Source: Chlorokybus atmophyticus (taxonomy: Eukaryota; Plantae; Mesostigma and Chlorokybus algae). Taken from it: 64,000 bases of DNA. The notes under the pieces are model-generated. The model was not told the origin of the DNA. It saw only the letters and a program-made list of their open reading frames with translations, and did not search any database. The first letter of the stretch is position 1, and each line of letters opens with the position of its first letter. The position numbers were made by a program, and so were the translations under genes. The stretch lies in contig RHPI01003369.1 of NCBI GenBank assembly GCA_009103225.1, positions 17,896 through 81,895 on the forward strand, given 5' to 3'. This document shows positions 52,953 to 64,000 of the stretch, one piece after another.

Positions 52953-54025
52953 NTTGAACAACCCGTGTTGTGCAAAAGGATAACCGTTATCCTTATTAAA
53001 TCTTCTGTGGCTATTATGAATTGATATGATACAGATTCATAATAATAATAATGATATTTGTAACGCTGCATTATAATTACAACATACGGACGGGCCTCAA
53101 GTTATGAGGTTGCACTTGTATGCCAGATATCTACCTCAATAATAATCACATTTAATTTGACACAACATTATTATGTGACAAAGTATCAACGTATGTCATA
53201 GCTGGTACAGGGGTCGCATAAATCAAGCGTCTCTTTGCAGCAATTGAAGCGGTCAATATCAATGCCGCTGTGACCTGCATTTGTTTTGGTGACAACGCCA
53301 CTCGACGATGGGTACATGGTGAAAAAGAGGGGCTTGGAATACAAGCACCGCTGGCATAAGTATGCGTGTTGCTTGTAAAGCTCTTTGATGGCCTCGTACT
53401 ATTGAGTAGTTGTGTGTGTGTGATGCAAAGTGGTATGCATATGTACAAATTAGAGTAAAACTCTGATGTTGTGCTATGCATGTGCACACTCATTGTGCAA
53501 AGTGTGCTTTGCGCAACTCATAAGTCCGTTCTGCGTGACGCACCATGAATCAAGCCTCAATGCCTCGTGAATTGATCACGCCACGTGTCCAACAAGTGAT
53601 AGCTGCAAATGATAGTTTATCAATATGTTCAAACAACGAACCTCTCGTAGCAATCATTTCGACGATATACAGATAGAGGCAGCGAGTGTCAATGTACATT
53701 ACAACTTACTTACTTGATTGTGCCCCAACATAATCGCATCGACAACATTGCACCATCTCGGTACCCACATACCTTGCCCACCCACATAGCATAGTGCGAC
53801 GGTTCTTGTGTTGTTTTGTCTCGTGTTCGGTTGTATGCCTTGTCTTGGTGCTTGTAAGTATTGGATTTAAGTGCTTGGCCCCTCGGAAATTACCATGCAC
53901 GTTCTAACTTGCGAATAAAAGCAGGAATGGGGATTGTACACATAGCATCATTCGCACGAGTGACTTCATGAAGGTAGGTGCTTTGCTCGGAAGAGACGGA
54001 CAAGTGCGCTTGCATGCTCACAGAC

Positions 54026-54029
<4 letters not shown>

Positions 54030-54082
<53 letters not shown>
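54030..54082. repeat. (AG)n microsatellite
   Basis: Direct read. Confidence 0.95.
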
Positions 54083-54085
<3 letters not shown>

Positions 54086-54447
54086 ATTTGCAGCACGTGC
54101 ATGTTCTCACATTTCAAAGGGATTAGTTGATAACAGCCAGTCCGCAAGGTGTCATATACCAACACCAAACCTGACGTGGCATTCAAGTTGGTGACTGCAT
54201 GGTTTGATGCCATGCCGGCATGAAGCTGTCAACACAACGTCAAGTGAGCGCATATGGAGCCGAGCAAGCAATTGACTGCAGCAAGACCCATGTTGAACGC
54301 AGGCAACAGCACATGTACAAATACAATGGGACAAACACTTAGTAATATATAATAACTATTCGCAACAATTGCAACAAATAGGTTTCATGCATCTGAGCTC
54401 AGTGGCGTGGCACACAAACCAGTGAAGCGAGTGCGCAAAACAGTACG

Positions 54448-55293
54448 TTACAAGTCATCGTCCAGGACAGTGTCTTCCAACACTTGAACAAGAAACTGTA
54501 GCACCAAAAAACCAATGATGGGAGTAAAGTCAATCTGCCCGGCCACAGGCGGGATCATGTTCCGGAAGACATTGAGGTAAGGGTCAGTCACCTGCAGAGA
54601 AGCACACACAAGTGTAAGTACCAACTGACCAAAAAAGTTGTTCAACACTTTCTCACGACATCAATGTGCAAGTCTTGACAATCGGGTACACAGGATGGAT
54701 ATACAAGCAATGTGAGCATGTATTGGCAAACTTCTGCTAACCTGTCTGAGAGTAACCCATGGTGAAGCGTCCCACTCAATTGTTGGGAACCATGTGAGCA
54801 GCACGCGCAGGAAGAGGAGCAGCAGGTACATCTTGATGAAGGAGGCAACAGCGCCGCCAATGACAGGCACGGTGGAGGCCAGCCCAGCGGAGAACGTCAG
54901 CGACGAGACGCCCCCGCCCGCCGCCGCTGCCGCAAGCTTCCATACCTTCGCCACCTTTCTCGCCATGCGCACGGCCACCCTCCATGCAGGCAGCGGCTCC
55001 CCATGCTGCCGCCGCCGCACCGCCTCTACCACCGTCTGCGCCCATGCAGGCAGAGTGACCCTTGCACGCTCGTTGTCCGCATAGACATTGCCAGCGTCTG
55101 CAGCGGCGGAGGAGGCCTGCGCACGCAGCACAAGCTGCGGCCTCTTCCTGTGCACCCGCAAACACGCCGCCGCAGGCAGCAGTGGCCTTAAACTTTGCCT
55201 CCTGTGCAAGTGGCAGCCGCCAAATAAAGAACGCGGCAATGAGACCAGCGACGTAGTCGCAGACGACGACGATGCGACCGCCGCAGCCGCCAT
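54448..55293 (-). CDS. YLMG: YGGT-family (YlmG homolog) chloroplast membrane protein, 2 exons
   Basis: Transit peptide, then FIKMYLLLLFLRVLLTWFP...PWVTLRQ|VTDPYLNVFRNMIPPVAGQIDFTPIIGFLVLQFL, a YGGT signature. Confidence 0.92.
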
Positions 55294-55567
55294 CCCGCCG
55301 CCAACCACCACGCCAACGCCGCCGCCGAAGATCCCAGCAACCTTACCCGCAAGTGAATAAAACCCTAACTCCAATCCCAAACTCGGATGAGTGTCGTTTG
55401 TGTTAGTATCGTAACGGGGGATTGTTTGGAAGGTACGCAGCGTAACCAAGCTGGCTTACGCGGTCCAATCAGATGAGCTCTTGCTTTGGTTGAGTGTATC
55501 TAAGTGTATCTTAAAGTGGCGTTGGGGGGCTGTTGAGGCGGCGGCGGTGGAGGTGGCGGCCTTTACG

Positions 55568-58015
55568 ATGGCGGCGGCGGCGGTTGGGGTGCCGGTGGGG
55601 GTTTGGAGGTGCGCCGGGTCGTTGAGGTCGCCCGCAGCTGCTGGGGTGCCGGTTGTCAGGAGACCGCTGCGCCATGGGGTCCTAGCGCTGCCACAGCGAC
55701 GGCTGACTCAGAGACGGCGGGTGGCCACGTCCGCCTCCCTCGTCCCGCAGCATGTCACAGACGTCCTCTACCAGCTTGCGGCACTTCCTGAGGCTGCCGC
55801 CGACGCTGCCGGGCAAGCTGCCGCCACAGCCACGGATGCTACCGCTGGCGCCGCAGCAGCTGCCGCCGCTAACAGTGGTAAGCCTGCATACTTCCTTTGA
55901 TGAACAGTACGTTGAATTATGCTCCAGTCGCATGCAACTGTTCAGTTGTGTGCTGTACCCAGTTTTAGTACTTCACTTGCCGTGGCATACTGTGTGTTCG
56001 AGGCCTGCTGAGCTGGTCGTTGCGTAAGGTCGACTGTTAGCAGTGTCAAGTAGATTGGCTTAAGTAACTTGTGCCTGCTTGTTGTTTTCCCTGCACGTTT
56101 GAACAACTGTTAGCAGTTGCATGATGATTGGTTGGAGTATGTCGTGCCTTCTTGTAGTTCTCCCTGCACAGGTTGTTATCTTGAAGTTACACTGGTTTAC
56201 AGCGTTTTGCGAACCGGTATTGCGCTTGTTTCGCATGTGAGTATATGTGCCGGAAAGGGGCAGCGTACATTTGATGAGTGCCGTTGTAACTTGCGTGAAT
56301 GCTGCTATGAGTTTCATGTTATTGAGGCTGTGCTGACAGCTATTGCACATGCACATTATGATGGAAGTCATGGTGGCTATTCAGGAGGTTTCTGGAGCTT
56401 TATCTCAGAGCCTCTGGAGGTGTTCCTGAAGGTGCTGGAGAGCGGTCTGGAGAAAGTGGGCGTGCCGTACTCATATGGTTTCTCCATCATCCTGTTGACC
56501 ATTCTGGTCAAGGCCATCACGTTCCCTCTCTCACAGAAACAGATCGAGTCCACTCAGAAGGTGCAGGCTTTGCAGCCACAAATCAAGGCTCTGCAAGCCC
56601 GCTACAAGGACGATCAAGAGCGCCTGCAGGTAATGTAGTCAAAACCATCCCTGACTGCAGCTCACATATTGGCGTGCTTGCATACTGCTGAAATGCAGGT
56701 TTTTGAACTCAATCTTGGTGTTTCACAATGCTGGCATGCTGGCATGTCATCGCGCTTGCCAATTCAGTTGCACTGTGTATGTTGAGGGTGCACTTTTCTG
56801 CAGGTTGAGACGGCCCGGTTGTACAGAACAGCAGAAGTCAATCCACTTGCAGGGTGTCTACCGACATTGGTCACGCTTCCTCTTTGGATTGGCCTTTACC
56901 GCGCGCTGACAAACGCCGCTAATGAGGGTGTGCTTGATGCCGGCTTCTTCTGGATCCCTTCGCTGGCAGGTATTGTGTTACACACTTGTCTGTTCGCATC
57001 TTACTCCTGGCAAGAGAATGTATTCACGCTGTTGCAGGTTGACATAGTGCTACTTGCTAGTGCTGTTGCACAAAGGGCAGCTATAACACTTATGTGCACA
57101 GGTCCAACCACACTGGCTGATCGCACAGCTGGGCTTGGAAACAAATGGCTGTTTCCATTTATCGATGGCGCGCCTCCCATTGGCTGGCAGGATGCCATAG
57201 CGTACCTTGTCCTGCCGGTTGTGTTGGTCATTTCCACCTACGTCAGTCAGAAGTTTGTGTCCCCAACGCCTACCAACGACTCCAAAGATGCAGGTGCTCA
57301 GACAAGCGCGGCGCTGCTCAAGTTCATCCCTTTGATGGTTGGTTACTTCTCCCTGAACGTCCCTGCTGGCCTCACGCTGTACTGGGTGACCAACAATGTG
57401 CTCACCACCGCCCAAACATTGTACTTCAAGAAGAAGTTGCCTGCACCCGCTGCCGCTGAAACAACTACCTTGCCTGGTGGGGAGCTTGTACCACTGCGAA
57501 GCTGTCTCTACATGTGCATCATGCAGTGGTGTGGTATCTAACTTGTGGATGTTGGCAGGGACTGCCAAGCGGGGTGGTTTGCCAGCAGCCAGCAGTGGGA
57601 ATGGTGCAGGTGTGGGCGCAAGCGCTCGTGAGAGCGCTGCTGCCACAGCAAGAGGACAGAGGTTTGCGGAGCAGAAGCGTCTTGAAGAGGAGCGCAAGCG
57701 CAAGCGCAAAGAGGCCGAGGAGGAGAAGAAGAGGCTCGCTGAGGAGGCTGCTACACGGGCTGCAGATGAGTCCTCATCCGTTGAGGTGGGCACTCTTGAG
57801 ACATGCAAGTGGATGGGGAGTAGTGGGATTGATGTGGTTGATATGCGTTGGGTGTTTTGCAGAAGGAGTTGCATATGCCAGACGTTGGTGTGGATAGCGT
57901 TCCCGATGCGCCTCCAGCAAAGGATCCCATGCCTGTCGCGTCCAGTGCATCGCCGTCCCCTTCATTAGCAAGGCGCAGCAAGCGAAAGAAGGCCACAGCA
58001 AAGAAGTCCTCTTAG
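55568..58015 (+). CDS. ALB3: Thylakoid membrane insertase ALB3 (YidC/Oxa1 family), multi-exon
   Basis: VPYSYGFSIILLTILVKAITFPL, VNPLAGCLPTL...IGLYRAL, GFFWIPSLAG, LSLNVP-like FSLNVPAGLTLYWVTNN, and basic C-terminal motifs (QRFAEQKRLEEE; RRSKRKK) typical of ALB3 rather than ALB4. Confidence 0.95.
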
Positions 58016-61000
58016 GTTGTAGTGGTGTTCTAGTGTAGTTGTCACTGAGGTCAATCTCTATGCCGGAGCGTTTTGTAATAGTGAATAGCTTTCATATGTA
58101 TTATGTGGAGTCAATCAGTGCTGCTACATGGGTCTGCTCGTGCGCTGCGTCACTTGTCTCGTACTGCTCCCCTTTGCATCTTTTGTACCCCATGACACCT
58201 TGCATGCTTTTAATGTTGCATACTAAGTTTTACACCAACTCGGTTGGTGCATGTGCTTGCCAAGCATTTTTCACATCCCTCCGCGCCTACTTGTATTGCA
58301 CCGTATATCGGGCACTACTTTGTATAGATCTGAAGTTCGTGATATTGCATGTAGGCGACACTTACCACGCATAATCCTGCCATTGGGAAACGCAGGCGCT
58401 TCATTGATGAGCATGGAATATGCCACCTTCAGCATTTCCCACATTGCATACTTGGTACACAATTGCGGTGCTTTTCGTGTGGAGTGCAATGCACACTTGT
58501 GACCTTTTCCAGTGTAGCTGCTGCAGGCCGACTCGCCTGATGCCTTGCTTGCGTTGTTGTGTTGTACACACTGCTGTTGTTAAGAGGCTTGGACCAGACC
58601 TTCACACTTTGCATTATTGCAAAGTGTATGTTGTGAGAAAGGTACATGCTTGTATGAGTCTGCACTACCAATTGGCTCTATTTCTTATGCATATGTCATG
58701 CAATATCGATAGTGATATTCAAGCTACTATTATTTATTGCTATTATATATGGCAAGCTGCTTGCAGTATAGCTTGCAGTATAGGGATACTAAATGGTGGT
58801 GCAAGTACCTTTTCACCCGTTTACAATGCCCCTTCAACAAGTCCAATTAAGACGCCCCCCTCATGGTTATCGGGCAATAATACCAATGATAGGGGCTTTT
58901 TTATTTTTAAAGGCAAGCGTATTCAAGTAGACTACATTATTCCATCGTCATAGTAATGTGGCATTATTATCAATGTGTGATTGCACATTCACAAAAAAGT
59001 TCTTTGAGATGCGGGCATGAACTCATGCTCTTCCGTGCAATACACTTAATCGCATACAACATATGCGTGATAATCAGCAGAAGCCGATTGGTGGAACATG
59101 GCAGCTTGCGTTCGAATCACGAAAACGTGCACAAGATATATGAAGTGTGATAAAATGACTGCAAGCATCAGACACAGCACACCCAATGCAATAGCCTCGT
59201 AGCGATGTTGCTAAAGCCAACCATATAGGGATTCTGGTGGGCAAGCCACTGTCTATTGCAATGACCAAGCCGCCTAGAAGTGGCCCACATCATGCACACC
59301 AAGCAATATCCCCGTTTATGTTCGACTTTTATATAAAGCTTATGTAATATGGTGGCACAATAGTGTAACATGCAAGGAGTTGAACCATAATTGGAGCAGA
59401 ATGGGGGTAATTACGGTAAGCACCTATCACATACACTCTACTCTGATACACACCAGTTACATGCATACATGTGTGCATGCTCGTGCAATCTTCAATGCCT
59501 TGCCTACACACGCACAAAGTTGTAATTCCTTTATGTAAAGCTATCACTAAAACTTTTTATAATATCCAAGCGGTGAGCATCACGCTTCGGTTGGCGCACA
59601 ATCAGCACATACCGTACTGCCACGACCCATTCATGCTAACATAAATGATACAAATGGTAAAACGGACATAAAACATAGGATACATATCATACATGATTGC
59701 GACTTTAAGTACATGAAACCAAAACCGAATAACCTAACGCGATCGTCGCGCGAACACTTCATGTACAGTATTAAGGAATGGTACAATATAATGTCGATAT
59801 GATATAGGCGATAAGTGCATATCTTATAAGTGCGTTTAACGCGATTGTGCACTTATAAGATATAAGATATGCACTTAACGCATAAATATGGACGTCACCG
59901 ACGTCTTTAGGGAACACCTGTGCGTCATAAGTATATGCGTTTATCAATCAATGCATGCTATAAGATGCCACGCCTTTTAGTTGTCTATGCGCTTATCAAT
60001 GTGGACTACACAAAAAGACTGGTATGTAAAAGTCTTTCAATTACATTCGTCAATGTATCACAATCAAATCAAGTAACTTCAGCTTAGGGTAACTAAAATA
60101 AGTGCATGTATTATGCATTTATGCCAAATTTACGTGCATAATTTGCACTTAACGCGGGTACATAAGTTACGCATCCGACGAGTGTGCATAAATGCAACAA
60201 GTGCACGTTCCTGATGGTATGCACTTATCCAGGTTAGGCTAACCATCTGAGCATCTGGCAATCCGACAGGATGCATTGACGCATGCTGTGACGCAAACAT
60301 AAAGTGACGTTATGGTCGGGCGTTACTACTCTGTGTGTGGGTTCCGAAGCTCCTGACAGGTTTGAAAAGTTTTCCAGTCGCAGGCTGCAAGCTTTGGTAT
60401 AAAGGACAGGCTAGGCCTACATTGCATGCAGCGTCGAGTCAGTCAACAAGTTTATGGACGCCGCGTCCGGTCATTGTCGACACGGCGTGAGCTTTCTACC
60501 ACCGGACACGGTCTGACCGGCAGTCGCCGTCGACAGCCGTCTAACGAGCGACGACGACCCGAACACACTCACACGCATGCATGCGCAAGTCGACGGCGAT
60601 GGCAACGTCGTTAGGCAACCTACTCGCCGGCAGTCGACGCCGACTGACCAGCAATACCGGTCACTGTGCTGCCGACAGCAATCGCGAATAAACTAGCAGA
60701 GAAAGGCCCCCCCGGGCGGTCCGACTGGCTAGGCATGCGGCCAGCATGCCTAGCCCGTGTCCCGCATGATGCGAGACACCCAGGCGGCGCGCGGCGTGCC
60801 ACACGCCGAAAATCTTTCCTCGTCGCGGGCTGCAAGTTTTGGTGTGTGCCATGAGTTAGCCTTTGGGTGAGGAGGGGGGTAATATCGCGTGTTGAACGTC
60901 GTGGCGCAGGGAGGAGGTGTGGAACTGTTAGGGTGAAAGTGTGTGTCATGGCATGCAACTCAAGGCGATGTTGACAGGTGGTCATAGTTGAAACTGACTC

Positions 61001-61045
61001 CTGTCCAGCAGATCAACTTGAAGCAGCAGTGGCAGATTGGCAGCA

Positions 61046-63696
61046 ATGGCAATGCAGGCACAGGTGTGCTGTGTTTGTCCGTGTGTTCAAGTGTCGTGTG
61101 CTTGCGTATGGTGTATTGTGCATGCAGCAGCACCTTACATTGCATGTGCCCGTAAGTTGGGGCTGACAATGCGTTGGGTTTGAGAGTCTGCCCATTCCTC
61201 ATCATCTCAAACACTCTCTGCGCAGTTTGTGTACCCGACCAATGTTGACCGGCGGTACAGACTGTGGGCTTGGGTCTTTTGGCTTCTCCTTGTGGCCGCC
61301 TTTTTGGCTTACACCATCTACCTCGTTGTTAAGGTTGGCATTGTCAATGGTGTTGTCGCTGCCAAAGGGGGGGCACCACAATTATCGCAACTGACTAATT
61401 GTTGTTGTGTTGTGACATTGTTGATGCTGTTTCCCAGCTTGTGGATGCTTATGAAAATCCCTCAGTCACTGTCTCGTACAACTCGCCTCGAGCCGAGCCA
61501 ATAGCACTGCCATCCATCCTAATGTGCTCCTATGGCAAGGTTAGGACACCAGTAGTAATTGCAACAATAACAACACCTACTACTACTACTACATATGTGA
61601 GTGGTGCTGAATCCCGACCCATGCGCTCAGGTCACTATTGATGTGGACACCTTTCTGCCGCGCTTCTTCCCTCGCAACACCAGCAATCTTGCAGTAGACC
61701 GCGGCACGTGCGGGCCAAAGCAATACTATCATTCCAACTTCTTCATGCCCAACAACAGCGTGGTGCTGGTGCGTGTGTGTGTGTGTGTGTGTACATGTTG
61801 TGTCAAAAGCCAATGTGCATGTGTATGCACACAGTTCTTGTAGACACACATGACTGACTGGTATGGTTGAACAGCAAACATGTGGAGGTGTGGTATCGAC
61901 TCAAGCTGGCTCGGGGTTGCCGCCATCGGATGGTTCTGTAGCAGTGCCGGCTGCGGGTCTCTCCCTTGACTACACGTTGGTATATAGGGAGAATGTAGCC
62001 GGGCCCAACGATTGGTGTGTTGGCTTCACTGCAACCAACGCACCGCCAATGGACCCACAGGTGCGTCATGCATCAGTGCACACGTGCGTGCATGTGCATG
62101 CGCAAGCGAACACATGTGCATGCTTGCGTTCAAGTGTACAATGCAAACATGCACACATGTCTGTTCACGTGCGGGCGGGTAGGGNNNNNNNNNNNNNNNN
62201 NNNNNNNNNNNNNNNNNNNNNNNNNNNNNNNNNNNNNNNNNNNNNNNNNNNNNNNNNNNNNNNNNNNNNNNNNNNNNNNNNNNNNNNNNNNNNNNNNNNN
62301 NNNNNNNNNNNNNNNNNNNNNNNNNNNNNNNNNNNNNNNNNNNNNNNNNNNNNNNNNNNNNNNNNNNNNNNNNNNNNNNNNNNNNNNNNNNNNNNNNNNN
62401 NNNNNNNNNNNNNNNNNNNNNNNNNNNNNNNNNNNNNNNNNNNNNNNNNNNNNNNNNNNNNNNNNNNNNNNNNNNNNNNNNNNNNNNNNNNNNNNNNNNN
62501 NNNNNNNNNNNNNNNNNNNNNNNNNNNNNNNNNNNNNNNNNNNNNNNNNNNNNNGGGGGGGGCGGGGGGCAAGAACATGCATGTGCTGCCACATGATGGG
62601 TCATACTTCTGAGCATAAATGAAATGCACATCCGCAGACTGGCTTTGGGTTTCACTTGTGGTTCAACGGGACGTTTGTGGACTTTATGGGCGCGGACCTC
62701 CTCATTGCCATTGCCGACACGCTGCCAGACTTTGCCAACACTGCTCTCAACCGCAAGTAGGCCTTGCGCGCATTTGTGTTGTTTGGGCAGCTAACACAAG
62801 TGGTTGGGACAAACAACGCTTATATTGGCACAACCAACTCAATTGCATATTCTTGTCCACAGGGACAGGTGGTTTTATGACATCCAAACCGATGTCCAGG
62901 GCTTCACTTACCTGCCAATAAACAAAGTGAACCGCGTGACTGCGGCAAAGACAGTGCGCACAAGAATCACAAGTGCAACCAGCACTGGCGACCCGGTAAG
63001 TACATGTTGTACATGTCACACGCTTGCATTGCACAACATCAATGGCATCTTGAGTAAGATGTCTCCCTTTTCTTCTGCAGGAGACATCTTACGCTGCACA
63101 GAGTGTTTCATCCTCAGATGTGCAGTTCACAAACACGCAGAAGCAAGGCGCGTATCAGCCACCCGGAGAGACATACTCACAAACCCTCATCTTGTGGTTT
63201 TACGCGTCTTATGATGGGACACTGCACATAGACGAGAACTTGCCTCTTTTCGGGCTCATTGGCAGTATTGGCGGCGCGTGGCAACTTGTCACGCTGCTCT
63301 TCTTTGTTGTGTTTGCTGTTCAAGGCGACATCCTCCTTGTCGTGAATGAGGACTTGGGGAAATGTTGGCGCAAGGTGCGAAGCTGCTGGAACAAGTTGTG
63401 TTGCGGGTCCCCGTTGAACACGCGTAATATACTGAAAGATGATAAAAGTCACAACTCCATCAATAATGTTGGCGCGGGTGAGTGTGATCTGTTCAACAAG
63501 AACTAGATGTGCATGTTTTGTCCATTGGCCGCACGTATGCATTGTAGTCTTGTGTACCTTGGGTAAGAGGACCGCCTTGTTGACCCTCATGTGAGTTGCA
63601 GTGAGATAACGTTGCTTGTTGGATGCAGATGTGTCATTAAGGTCGGCGTCTGAGATCAGTTCGGAGAGGCCCGTTGAGCTGAGGGCAATTCCTTGA
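61046..63696 (+). CDS. Two-TM membrane protein with large ectodomain; DEG/ENaC/ASIC- or PAC-like ion channel candidate (~422 aa, 9 exons)
   Basis: Phase-consistent GT-AG exons: 61046-61063, 61226-61333, 61438-61539, 61631-61768, 61875-62060, 62638-62756, 62863-62995, 63081-63477, 63629-63696. TM1 RYRLWAWVFWLLLVAAFLAYTIYLVV, post-TM1 YENPSVTVSY...LPSILMCS, TM2 region LFGLIGSIGGAWQLVTLLFFVVF. Gene model confidence is high; the family call is moderate. Confidence 0.7.
62185..62554. other. Assembly gap (370 N) inside an intron of the last gene
   Basis: Run of N. Both flanking exon junctions are phase 0, so no hidden exon is required, though one cannot be excluded. Confidence 0.98.
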
Positions 63697-64000
63697 AGCT
63701 GTGTAAAGCAAATTTTGTTTGACTTTGCGTATGATGCGGTGATAGCATGGGTGATCACAGGCATGACAGTCTGCACTTGCGACCGGTCGATGCTTGCTGC
63801 GGTGTGTTGTGTTTTGTGTTGGTTGGTTTGCGATATACAACTCGTCGTGTCACTTTTGCAACATGGCAGTGGTGCTGCCGGGGTTTGTGCGTTGTTACCT
63901 GATAGGAGATCTGAGTTATCAGGTGGTGTTTTATATATTGAGAGCTGTGAAGCGCAGCAGGCAGCTGCTGCACCCTCAACATGCGATCCCTTCCCCCCCC

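Follow-up and report, generated by a model that had tools for sequence, protein, structure and literature searches.

The gene at positions 61046–63696 on the forward strand of the 64 000-nucleotide stretch of Chlorokybus atmophyticus DNA analysed here (the window) appears to encode a very divergent, Chlorokybus-specific protein of the DEG/ENaC superfamily, probably a trimeric channel; we give this reading a probability of roughly 0.55. An earlier, sequence-only reading of the window had proposed a divergent DEG/ENaC/ASIC-like channel at this place. That proposal was upheld in part, namely by a match of residues 16–99 to the DEG/ENaC profile and by a topology with two transmembrane helices (TM1 and TM2), but not by the ectodomain or TM2, for which no match was found. 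The gene itself is real, spliced and transcribed.

The evidence for the DEG/ENaC assignment comes from the Pfam profile ASC (PF00858). The protein (EukProt P0002) matched this profile with 29.1 bits (E 7e-7), residues 16–99 being aligned with positions 16–100 of 455, and the HMMER comparison recommended in the sequence-only reading thus gave a score above the gathering score (curated cut-off) of 23.6 bits, for this N-terminal stretch only. PF00858 was also present in the precomputed annotation of the database. The DNA coding for the matching residues lies at 61253–61699, comprising parts of exons 2–4 with their introns. To determine whether the match reflects a hydrophobic helix only, truncations of the protein were scanned with Pfam. 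The ASC score was 9.3 bits for fragment 1–45, 20.0 bits for 1–60, 30.3 bits for 1–80 and 33.1 bits for 1–110; for fragments shortened from the N-terminal side, it was 27.6 bits (25–110), 16.8 bits (33–110) and 12.2 bits (38–110, almost devoid of TM1). The register was unchanged over all fragments, ASC was the top or joint-top family for 1–110 and for the three fragments shortened from the N-terminal side, and the runner-up families on fragment 1–110 reached only about 12–13 bits. Based on these truncation scores, more than half of the ASC score is contributed by the stretch following TM1, which includes YENPSVTVSY and LPSILMCS. Since fragment 38–110 still scores in the fixed register, the match is not merely that of a hydrophobic helix. 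A paralog, Chrsp14S00780 (P0001), matched the same region of the profile with 20 bits at full length and with 23.8 bits for residues 1–100 (profile positions 4–72). Homology of the N-terminal part to DEG/ENaC proteins is probable from these alignments.

The gene model consists of nine spliced exons that give 1269 nucleotides, i.e. 422 residues plus a stop codon, with GT..AG ends on every intron. This is the number of phase-compatible exons and the approximate length that had been read from the letters alone. The spliced translation is identical at every residue to EukProt P0002 (jgi/Chlat1/5811) of C. atmophyticus, and the model is already in public annotation as Chrsp4S06273. Transcript evidence was taken from assembled contigs of four public runs (X1–X4; one organism, two studies), which were placed on 60800–64000; all four runs contained the gene stretch at approximately the exonic share of the sampled words. 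The splicing check suggested earlier was answered by these contigs, in which seven junctions were carried directly (61063/61226, 61333/61438, 61539/61631, 62060/62638, 62756/62863, 62995/63081 and 63477/63629), the junction-carrying contigs of X1 and X2 showing zero mismatches against the window. The junction between exons 4 and 5 is supported indirectly, as in X2 record 4 positions 61757 and 61874 are separated by the expected ~10 letters.

The transcribed 5′ exon extends at least over the untranslated region 60895–61045, based on contig starts at 60895 (X3 record 6) and 60941 (X2 record 3), and its coding part, 61046–61063, gives residues 1–6 (MAMQAQ); the junction at its end was found in all four runs. 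The start codon at 61046 is the first in-frame ATG downstream of a TGA at 61019, indicating that the N-terminus is genuinely short. Exon 2 (61226–61333, residues 7–42) codes for the rest of the short cytosolic N-terminus (VDRRYR) and for TM1 (61262–61333, residues 19–42), as judged by hydropathy, charges and junctions. Exon 3 (61438–61539, residues 43–76) carries the two motifs that follow TM1, and exon 4 (61631–61768, residues 77–122) carries the N-glycosylation sequons N92 (61676–61684) and N117 (61751–61759). Its donor adjoins a (GT)12 run (61769–61792), which begins exactly at this site. Exon 5 (61875–62060) codes for residues 123–184. Intron 5 (62061–62637) encloses an assembly gap at 62185–62554, so that its length in the window need not be its true length. 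Contigs of X1, X2 and X3 join 62060 straight to 62638 without mismatch, leaving out 577 bases that begin with GT and end with AG. This places the gap inside the intron, where it hides no exon in the transcript seen. The paralog carries the same unbroken PPMDPQTGFGFHLWFNG over the exon 5/6 joint. A G-rich run (62555–62569) borders the right edge of the gap and is perhaps its cause.

Downstream of the gap, exon 6 (62638–62756, residues 185–224) contains the invariant TGFGFHLWFNGTFVD and sequon N194 (62665–62673), while exon 7 (62863–62995, residues 224–268) contains the invariant DRWFYDIQTDVQG and KVNRVT. Exon 8 (63081–63477, residues 269–401) codes for a Ser/Thr-rich linker, a strand region preceding TM2, TM2 itself (63252–63320, residues 326–348, by hydropathy) and a Cys-rich cytosolic juxtamembrane tail. 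Residues 401–422 and the TGA stop are encoded by exon 9 (63629–63696), followed by a 3′ untranslated region of at least 63697–63961 (contig ends at 63961 in X1 record 2 and 63956 in X2 record 5). An antisense open reading frame (ORF) of 199 residues at 63177–63776 on the reverse strand, overlying exons 8–9, lacks support, as all spliced contigs have GT..AG ends on the forward strand.

The translated product is predicted to be a type-III membrane glycoprotein of 422 residues with both ends cytosolic, two membrane helices and an outer domain of 283 residues. Residues 1–18 form the cytosolic N-terminus with three K/R, and hydropathy detected hydrophobic segments at 19–42 and 326–348. The flanks of both segments are K/R-rich toward the termini and acidic toward the loop, in line with the positive-inside rule for an N-in/C-in protein. 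Hydropathy and charges thus agree with the order of parts described in the sequence-only reading: a very short N-terminus, TM1, an ectodomain, TM2 and a cytosolic tail. The ectodomain (residues 43–325), described there as Cys-poor, about 280 residues long and bearing the sequons NTS, NNS and NGT, has four cysteines (C72, C103, C125 and C170), three of which are common to the paralog, and the sequons N92 (NTS), N117 (NNS) and N194 (NGT), the last of which is invariant between the paralogs. The four motifs listed earlier were located at residues 18 (RLWAWVF), 47 (YENPSVTVSY), 66 (LPSILMCS) and 326 (GLIGSIGG). Residues 259–300 are Ser/Thr-rich with no predicted secondary structure, and this linker is probably unstructured. 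The following pre-TM2 segment (residues 301–325) is conserved, with 64% identity between the paralogs, and TM2 opens with GLIGSIGGAW. The membrane-adjacent tail contains cysteines at 363, 370, 375 and 376, which are not found in the paralog.

The paralog, also from C. atmophyticus, was the sole match of exon 8 in an exhaustive HMMER search of 1.84 billion representatives, and a word-indexed search with the paralog returned Chrsp4S06273. The two proteins share 50% identity over their full length and a common architecture. Their best conserved block is residues 166–258 (encoded within 62004–62965), with 71% identity, and the invariant blocks include PPMDPQTGFGFHLWFNGTFVD, DRWFYDIQTDVQG and GTLHID..PLFG.IG..GGAW. 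The paralog differs in its longer N-terminus, of which the part from residue 13 on is aligned to the ASC profile from position 4 on, and in the absence of both the Cys-rich tail and C72. In a residue scan of the whole paralog, neither His-Gly nor G/S-x-S was found. Its N-terminus carries SSIGG, with GG at residues 17–18 inside the ASC-aligned stretch, presumably at about the place of the HG motif of DEG/ENaC proteins; this GG may be a degenerate HG. Beyond the two paralogs, no relative was detected among 5.8 billion proteins by word-indexed searches with the paralog, with the alignment or with residues 8–110 of Chrsp4S06273. Pattern scans of contigs from metagenomes, viruses and prokaryote genomes gave no relative, and tblastn with both paralogs gave no tandem copy in the window. 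The homologue survey proposed earlier therefore ends with two Chlorokybus paralogs in the protein databases and contigs searched.

A second form of the gene, divergent by several per cent and with the same exon structure, was found in X3 and X4 over 61223–63716. It contains 91 differences from the window; among the 40 listed, 31 were synonymous and 31 were at third codon positions. A 1-base insertion is offset by a compensating deletion three bases on, so that the frame is kept. The protein is under purifying selection. The divergent form predominated in X3 and X4 and was present at trace depth in X2, and the window form was present at trace depth in X3. We prefer to regard the divergent form as the ortholog of another strain or cryptic species; it could instead be a recent or close paralog, and the trace-depth contigs could represent carry-over between samples of one study.

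Several observations weigh against the DEG/ENaC reading. The ASC match is a single stretch of approximately 85 of the 455 profile positions, and neither the ectodomain (43–325) nor the TM2/tail fragment (300–422), nor their equivalents in the paralog, matched ASC at E ≤10. No ASIC or ENaC chain was found among PDB sequences by phmmer and profile searches with exon 8, either paralog or the two-sequence profile, and no bridge to canonical DEG/ENaC proteins, including any of this genome, appeared in the searches of 5.8 billion and 1.84 billion sequences. Of the DEG/ENaC hallmarks, HG is absent throughout the protein by residue scan; G/S-x-S is absent from TM2, the sole G.S of the protein being at residue 150 in the loop; and with only four loop cysteines, the ectodomain is not cysteine-rich. 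No ASC cluster was among the top 30 language-model neighbours. As the ectodomain, TM2 and PDB sequence searches gave no match, DEG/ENaC membership rests on these ~85 profile positions, and by its sequence the protein does not qualify as a bona fide DEG/ENaC member, several defining features having failed. The sequence-only reading had itself remarked on the lack of a pre-TM1 HG, a Cys-rich thumb and GAS, and the residue scan, in which GAS was also absent throughout the protein, bears this out.

Two finer resemblances suggested in the sequence-only reading, that of GLIGSIGG to TM2 of ASIC and that of YENPSVTVSY to PAC/TMEM206, received no support from the searches, and the HMMER comparison with TMEM206 gave no match at E ≤10. 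At this threshold, the ectodomain and TM2/tail fragments of both paralogs also lacked any match to TMEM206 or P2X. The PDB sequence searches yielded no PAC or P2X chain, only chance matches to antibodies and Pierce1 (E 0.18 to 1.2). The exon-by-exon Pfam scan gave no match, the exons being too short, and NCBIfam gave noise only. The potassium-channel profile Kir (PF01007, IRK) reached 8.4–12.6 bits over TM2, below its cut-off of 22.7, and was treated as noise, as were the sub-threshold PufX and holin matches of the transmembrane helices.

Structure prediction was uninformative on this question. Two AlphaFold2 runs on the two-sequence alignment gave confidence values (predicted local distance difference test, pLDDT) of 37.5 and 35.9, too low for the fold to be read. 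A Foldseek search with the pLDDT-37.5 model gave TM-scores of at most 0.17 and no ASIC, PAC or P2X chain, a result that speaks neither for nor against these folds because the model is too poor. Among the language-model neighbours, all to be taken as leads only, the nearest clusters were unnamed Mucoromycota transmembrane proteins of ~417 residues (score 0.96) and ciliate proteins with Pfam Y80K_N (0.91); one PAC cluster was also present (0.85, rank 29). The Mucoromycota and ciliate neighbours may form, together with Chrsp4S06273, a wider and so far unrecognised two-pass family.

The strongest competitor, which we consider clearly less probable than a divergent DEG/ENaC-superfamily protein, is that the gene encodes a two-pass membrane glycoprotein restricted to Chlorokybus and belonging to a new family with no relation to DEG/ENaC. 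The Pfam match would then be due to chance or aided by composition, and the protein could serve as a receptor, in adhesion, in sensing the wall or as a channel of another kind. The existence of only two members in the databases searched, the ~80% of the protein with no match at all, the absence of the DEG/ENaC hallmarks and the unnamed fungal and ciliate proteins, rather than ASC, as nearest language-model clusters are all consistent with this alternative. A chance match is, however, difficult to reconcile with ASC E-values of 7e-7 to 4e-8 above the curated cut-off, with the repetition of the match in the paralog and the constant register in truncations, and with the 20-bit gap between ASC and any other family. 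The end of the profile match near residue 99, within exon 4, would also fit a chimera of a DEG/ENaC-type N-terminal module (exons 2–4) with an unrelated ectodomain, and the missing HG and G/S-x-S and the probably unstructured linker at 259–300 before TM2 would fit this or a decayed, non-conducting regulatory or structural subunit. We consider either of these improbable: the entire architecture is common to both paralogs at 50% identity, their conservation is strongest in the core of the ectodomain and in the pre-TM2 segment, and purifying selection acts on the gene, which together favour one co-evolving functional unit. Still more improbable is membership in another family of trimeric two-TM channels, resembling either P2X or the proton-activated chloride channel PAC/TMEM206. 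These have the same topology as Chrsp4S06273, the ectodomain is close in size to that of PAC, and the PAC cluster among the language-model neighbours is a lead in this direction; against it, PF15122 and PF00864 gave no match at E ≤10 with whole proteins or fragments, TM2 lacks a lysine, the loop has only four cysteines, and ASC was the sole significant profile match.

Under the favoured reading of a divergent DEG/ENaC-superfamily protein, TM1 and the segment following it would have been retained, whereas the HG motif, the G/S-x-S filter and a finger and thumb rich in cysteines would have been lost or never present. The protein would form trimers, either by itself or together with its paralog, with TM2 lining the pore through a face of small residues (G326/G329/S330/G333) and the invariant W335. 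Opening may be coupled to an external stimulus, such as membrane stretch, a ligand or pH, through the conserved ectodomain block (166–258) and the pre-TM2 segment. A role as a channel, assembly into trimers and a response to pH or mechanical force are all inferences for such a protein. A bolder version, which we hold to be rather unlikely, is that of a minimal DEG/ENaC-superfamily channel of the earliest-branching streptophyte algae, i.e. a trimeric gated pore with a new ectodomain and with no HG, Cys-rich thumb or G/S-x-S; such a minimal channel could stand structurally between DEG/ENaC and PAC-type channels.

Upstream of the gene and on the same strand, two ORF pieces at 56117–57541 matched Pfam 60KD_IMP (profile positions 1–52 and 58–163), and together they look like one intron-split gene for a membrane insertase of the YidC/Oxa1/Alb3 type. 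With this insertase gene as its upstream neighbour, a native algal context of the channel-like gene is plausible. On the reverse strand, an ORF of 262 residues at 54661–55449 contains runs rich in Ala and Gly and is hydrophobic in its C-terminal part; no Pfam match was obtained for it at E 0.001, and it may be an exon of a further gene for a membrane protein. Rfam gave no match over 54000–64000.

To our knowledge, DEG/ENaC channels are regarded as all but confined to animals. One study (bioRxiv 10.1101/2022.06.28.497943; published as PMC10507113) reports homologues outside animals from Filasterea and Heterokonta only, and land plants have no DEG/ENaC according to a plant-focused survey (PMC12806904). 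Apart from this survey, we found no paper linking DEG/ENaC to Chlorokybus or streptophytes. An expressed and selected gene of the plant lineage with only the TM1-proximal DEG/ENaC signature would widen the known sequence space of the family and offer a natural test of which motifs gating and selectivity require. If the protein is a minimal channel as outlined above, the core of the superfamily would be older than animals and would work without the textbook motifs. If the ASC match is spurious, the gene would belong to an orphan pair of two-pass glycoproteins confined to Chlorokybus, of much narrower interest.

Compared with known channel families, Chrsp4S06273 shares with P2X receptors (PF00864), which are known in some green algae, the two-TM, large-loop architecture; it differs in its four loop cysteines, against ten conserved ones in P2X, and in the lack of a profile match for whole proteins and fragments. 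The ectodomain of PAC/TMEM206 (PF15122) is beta-rich and cysteine-poor, and likeness to this family consists in the two-TM topology, a Cys-poor ectodomain of comparable size and the weak language-model neighbourhood, whereas the profile gave no match at E ≤10 and TM2 has no lysine. DEG/ENaC channels are marked by an HG motif for gating ahead of TM1, by a conserved ladder of disulfides in a cysteine-rich thumb and finger and by G/S-x-S as the selectivity filter in TM2. From these channels, the protein differs in its N-terminus of only 18 residues with no HG before TM1, in its four loop cysteines instead of many, in a TM2 with no G/S-x-S, in an ectodomain ~100 residues shorter than is typical and in the lack of pairwise similarity to any DEG/ENaC protein in sequence searches. 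Its likeness to them lies in the two TM helices, the large outer loop with sequons and the cytosolic ends, and in TM1 and the ~55 residues that follow it, which match PF00858 above the cut-off and in a fixed register.

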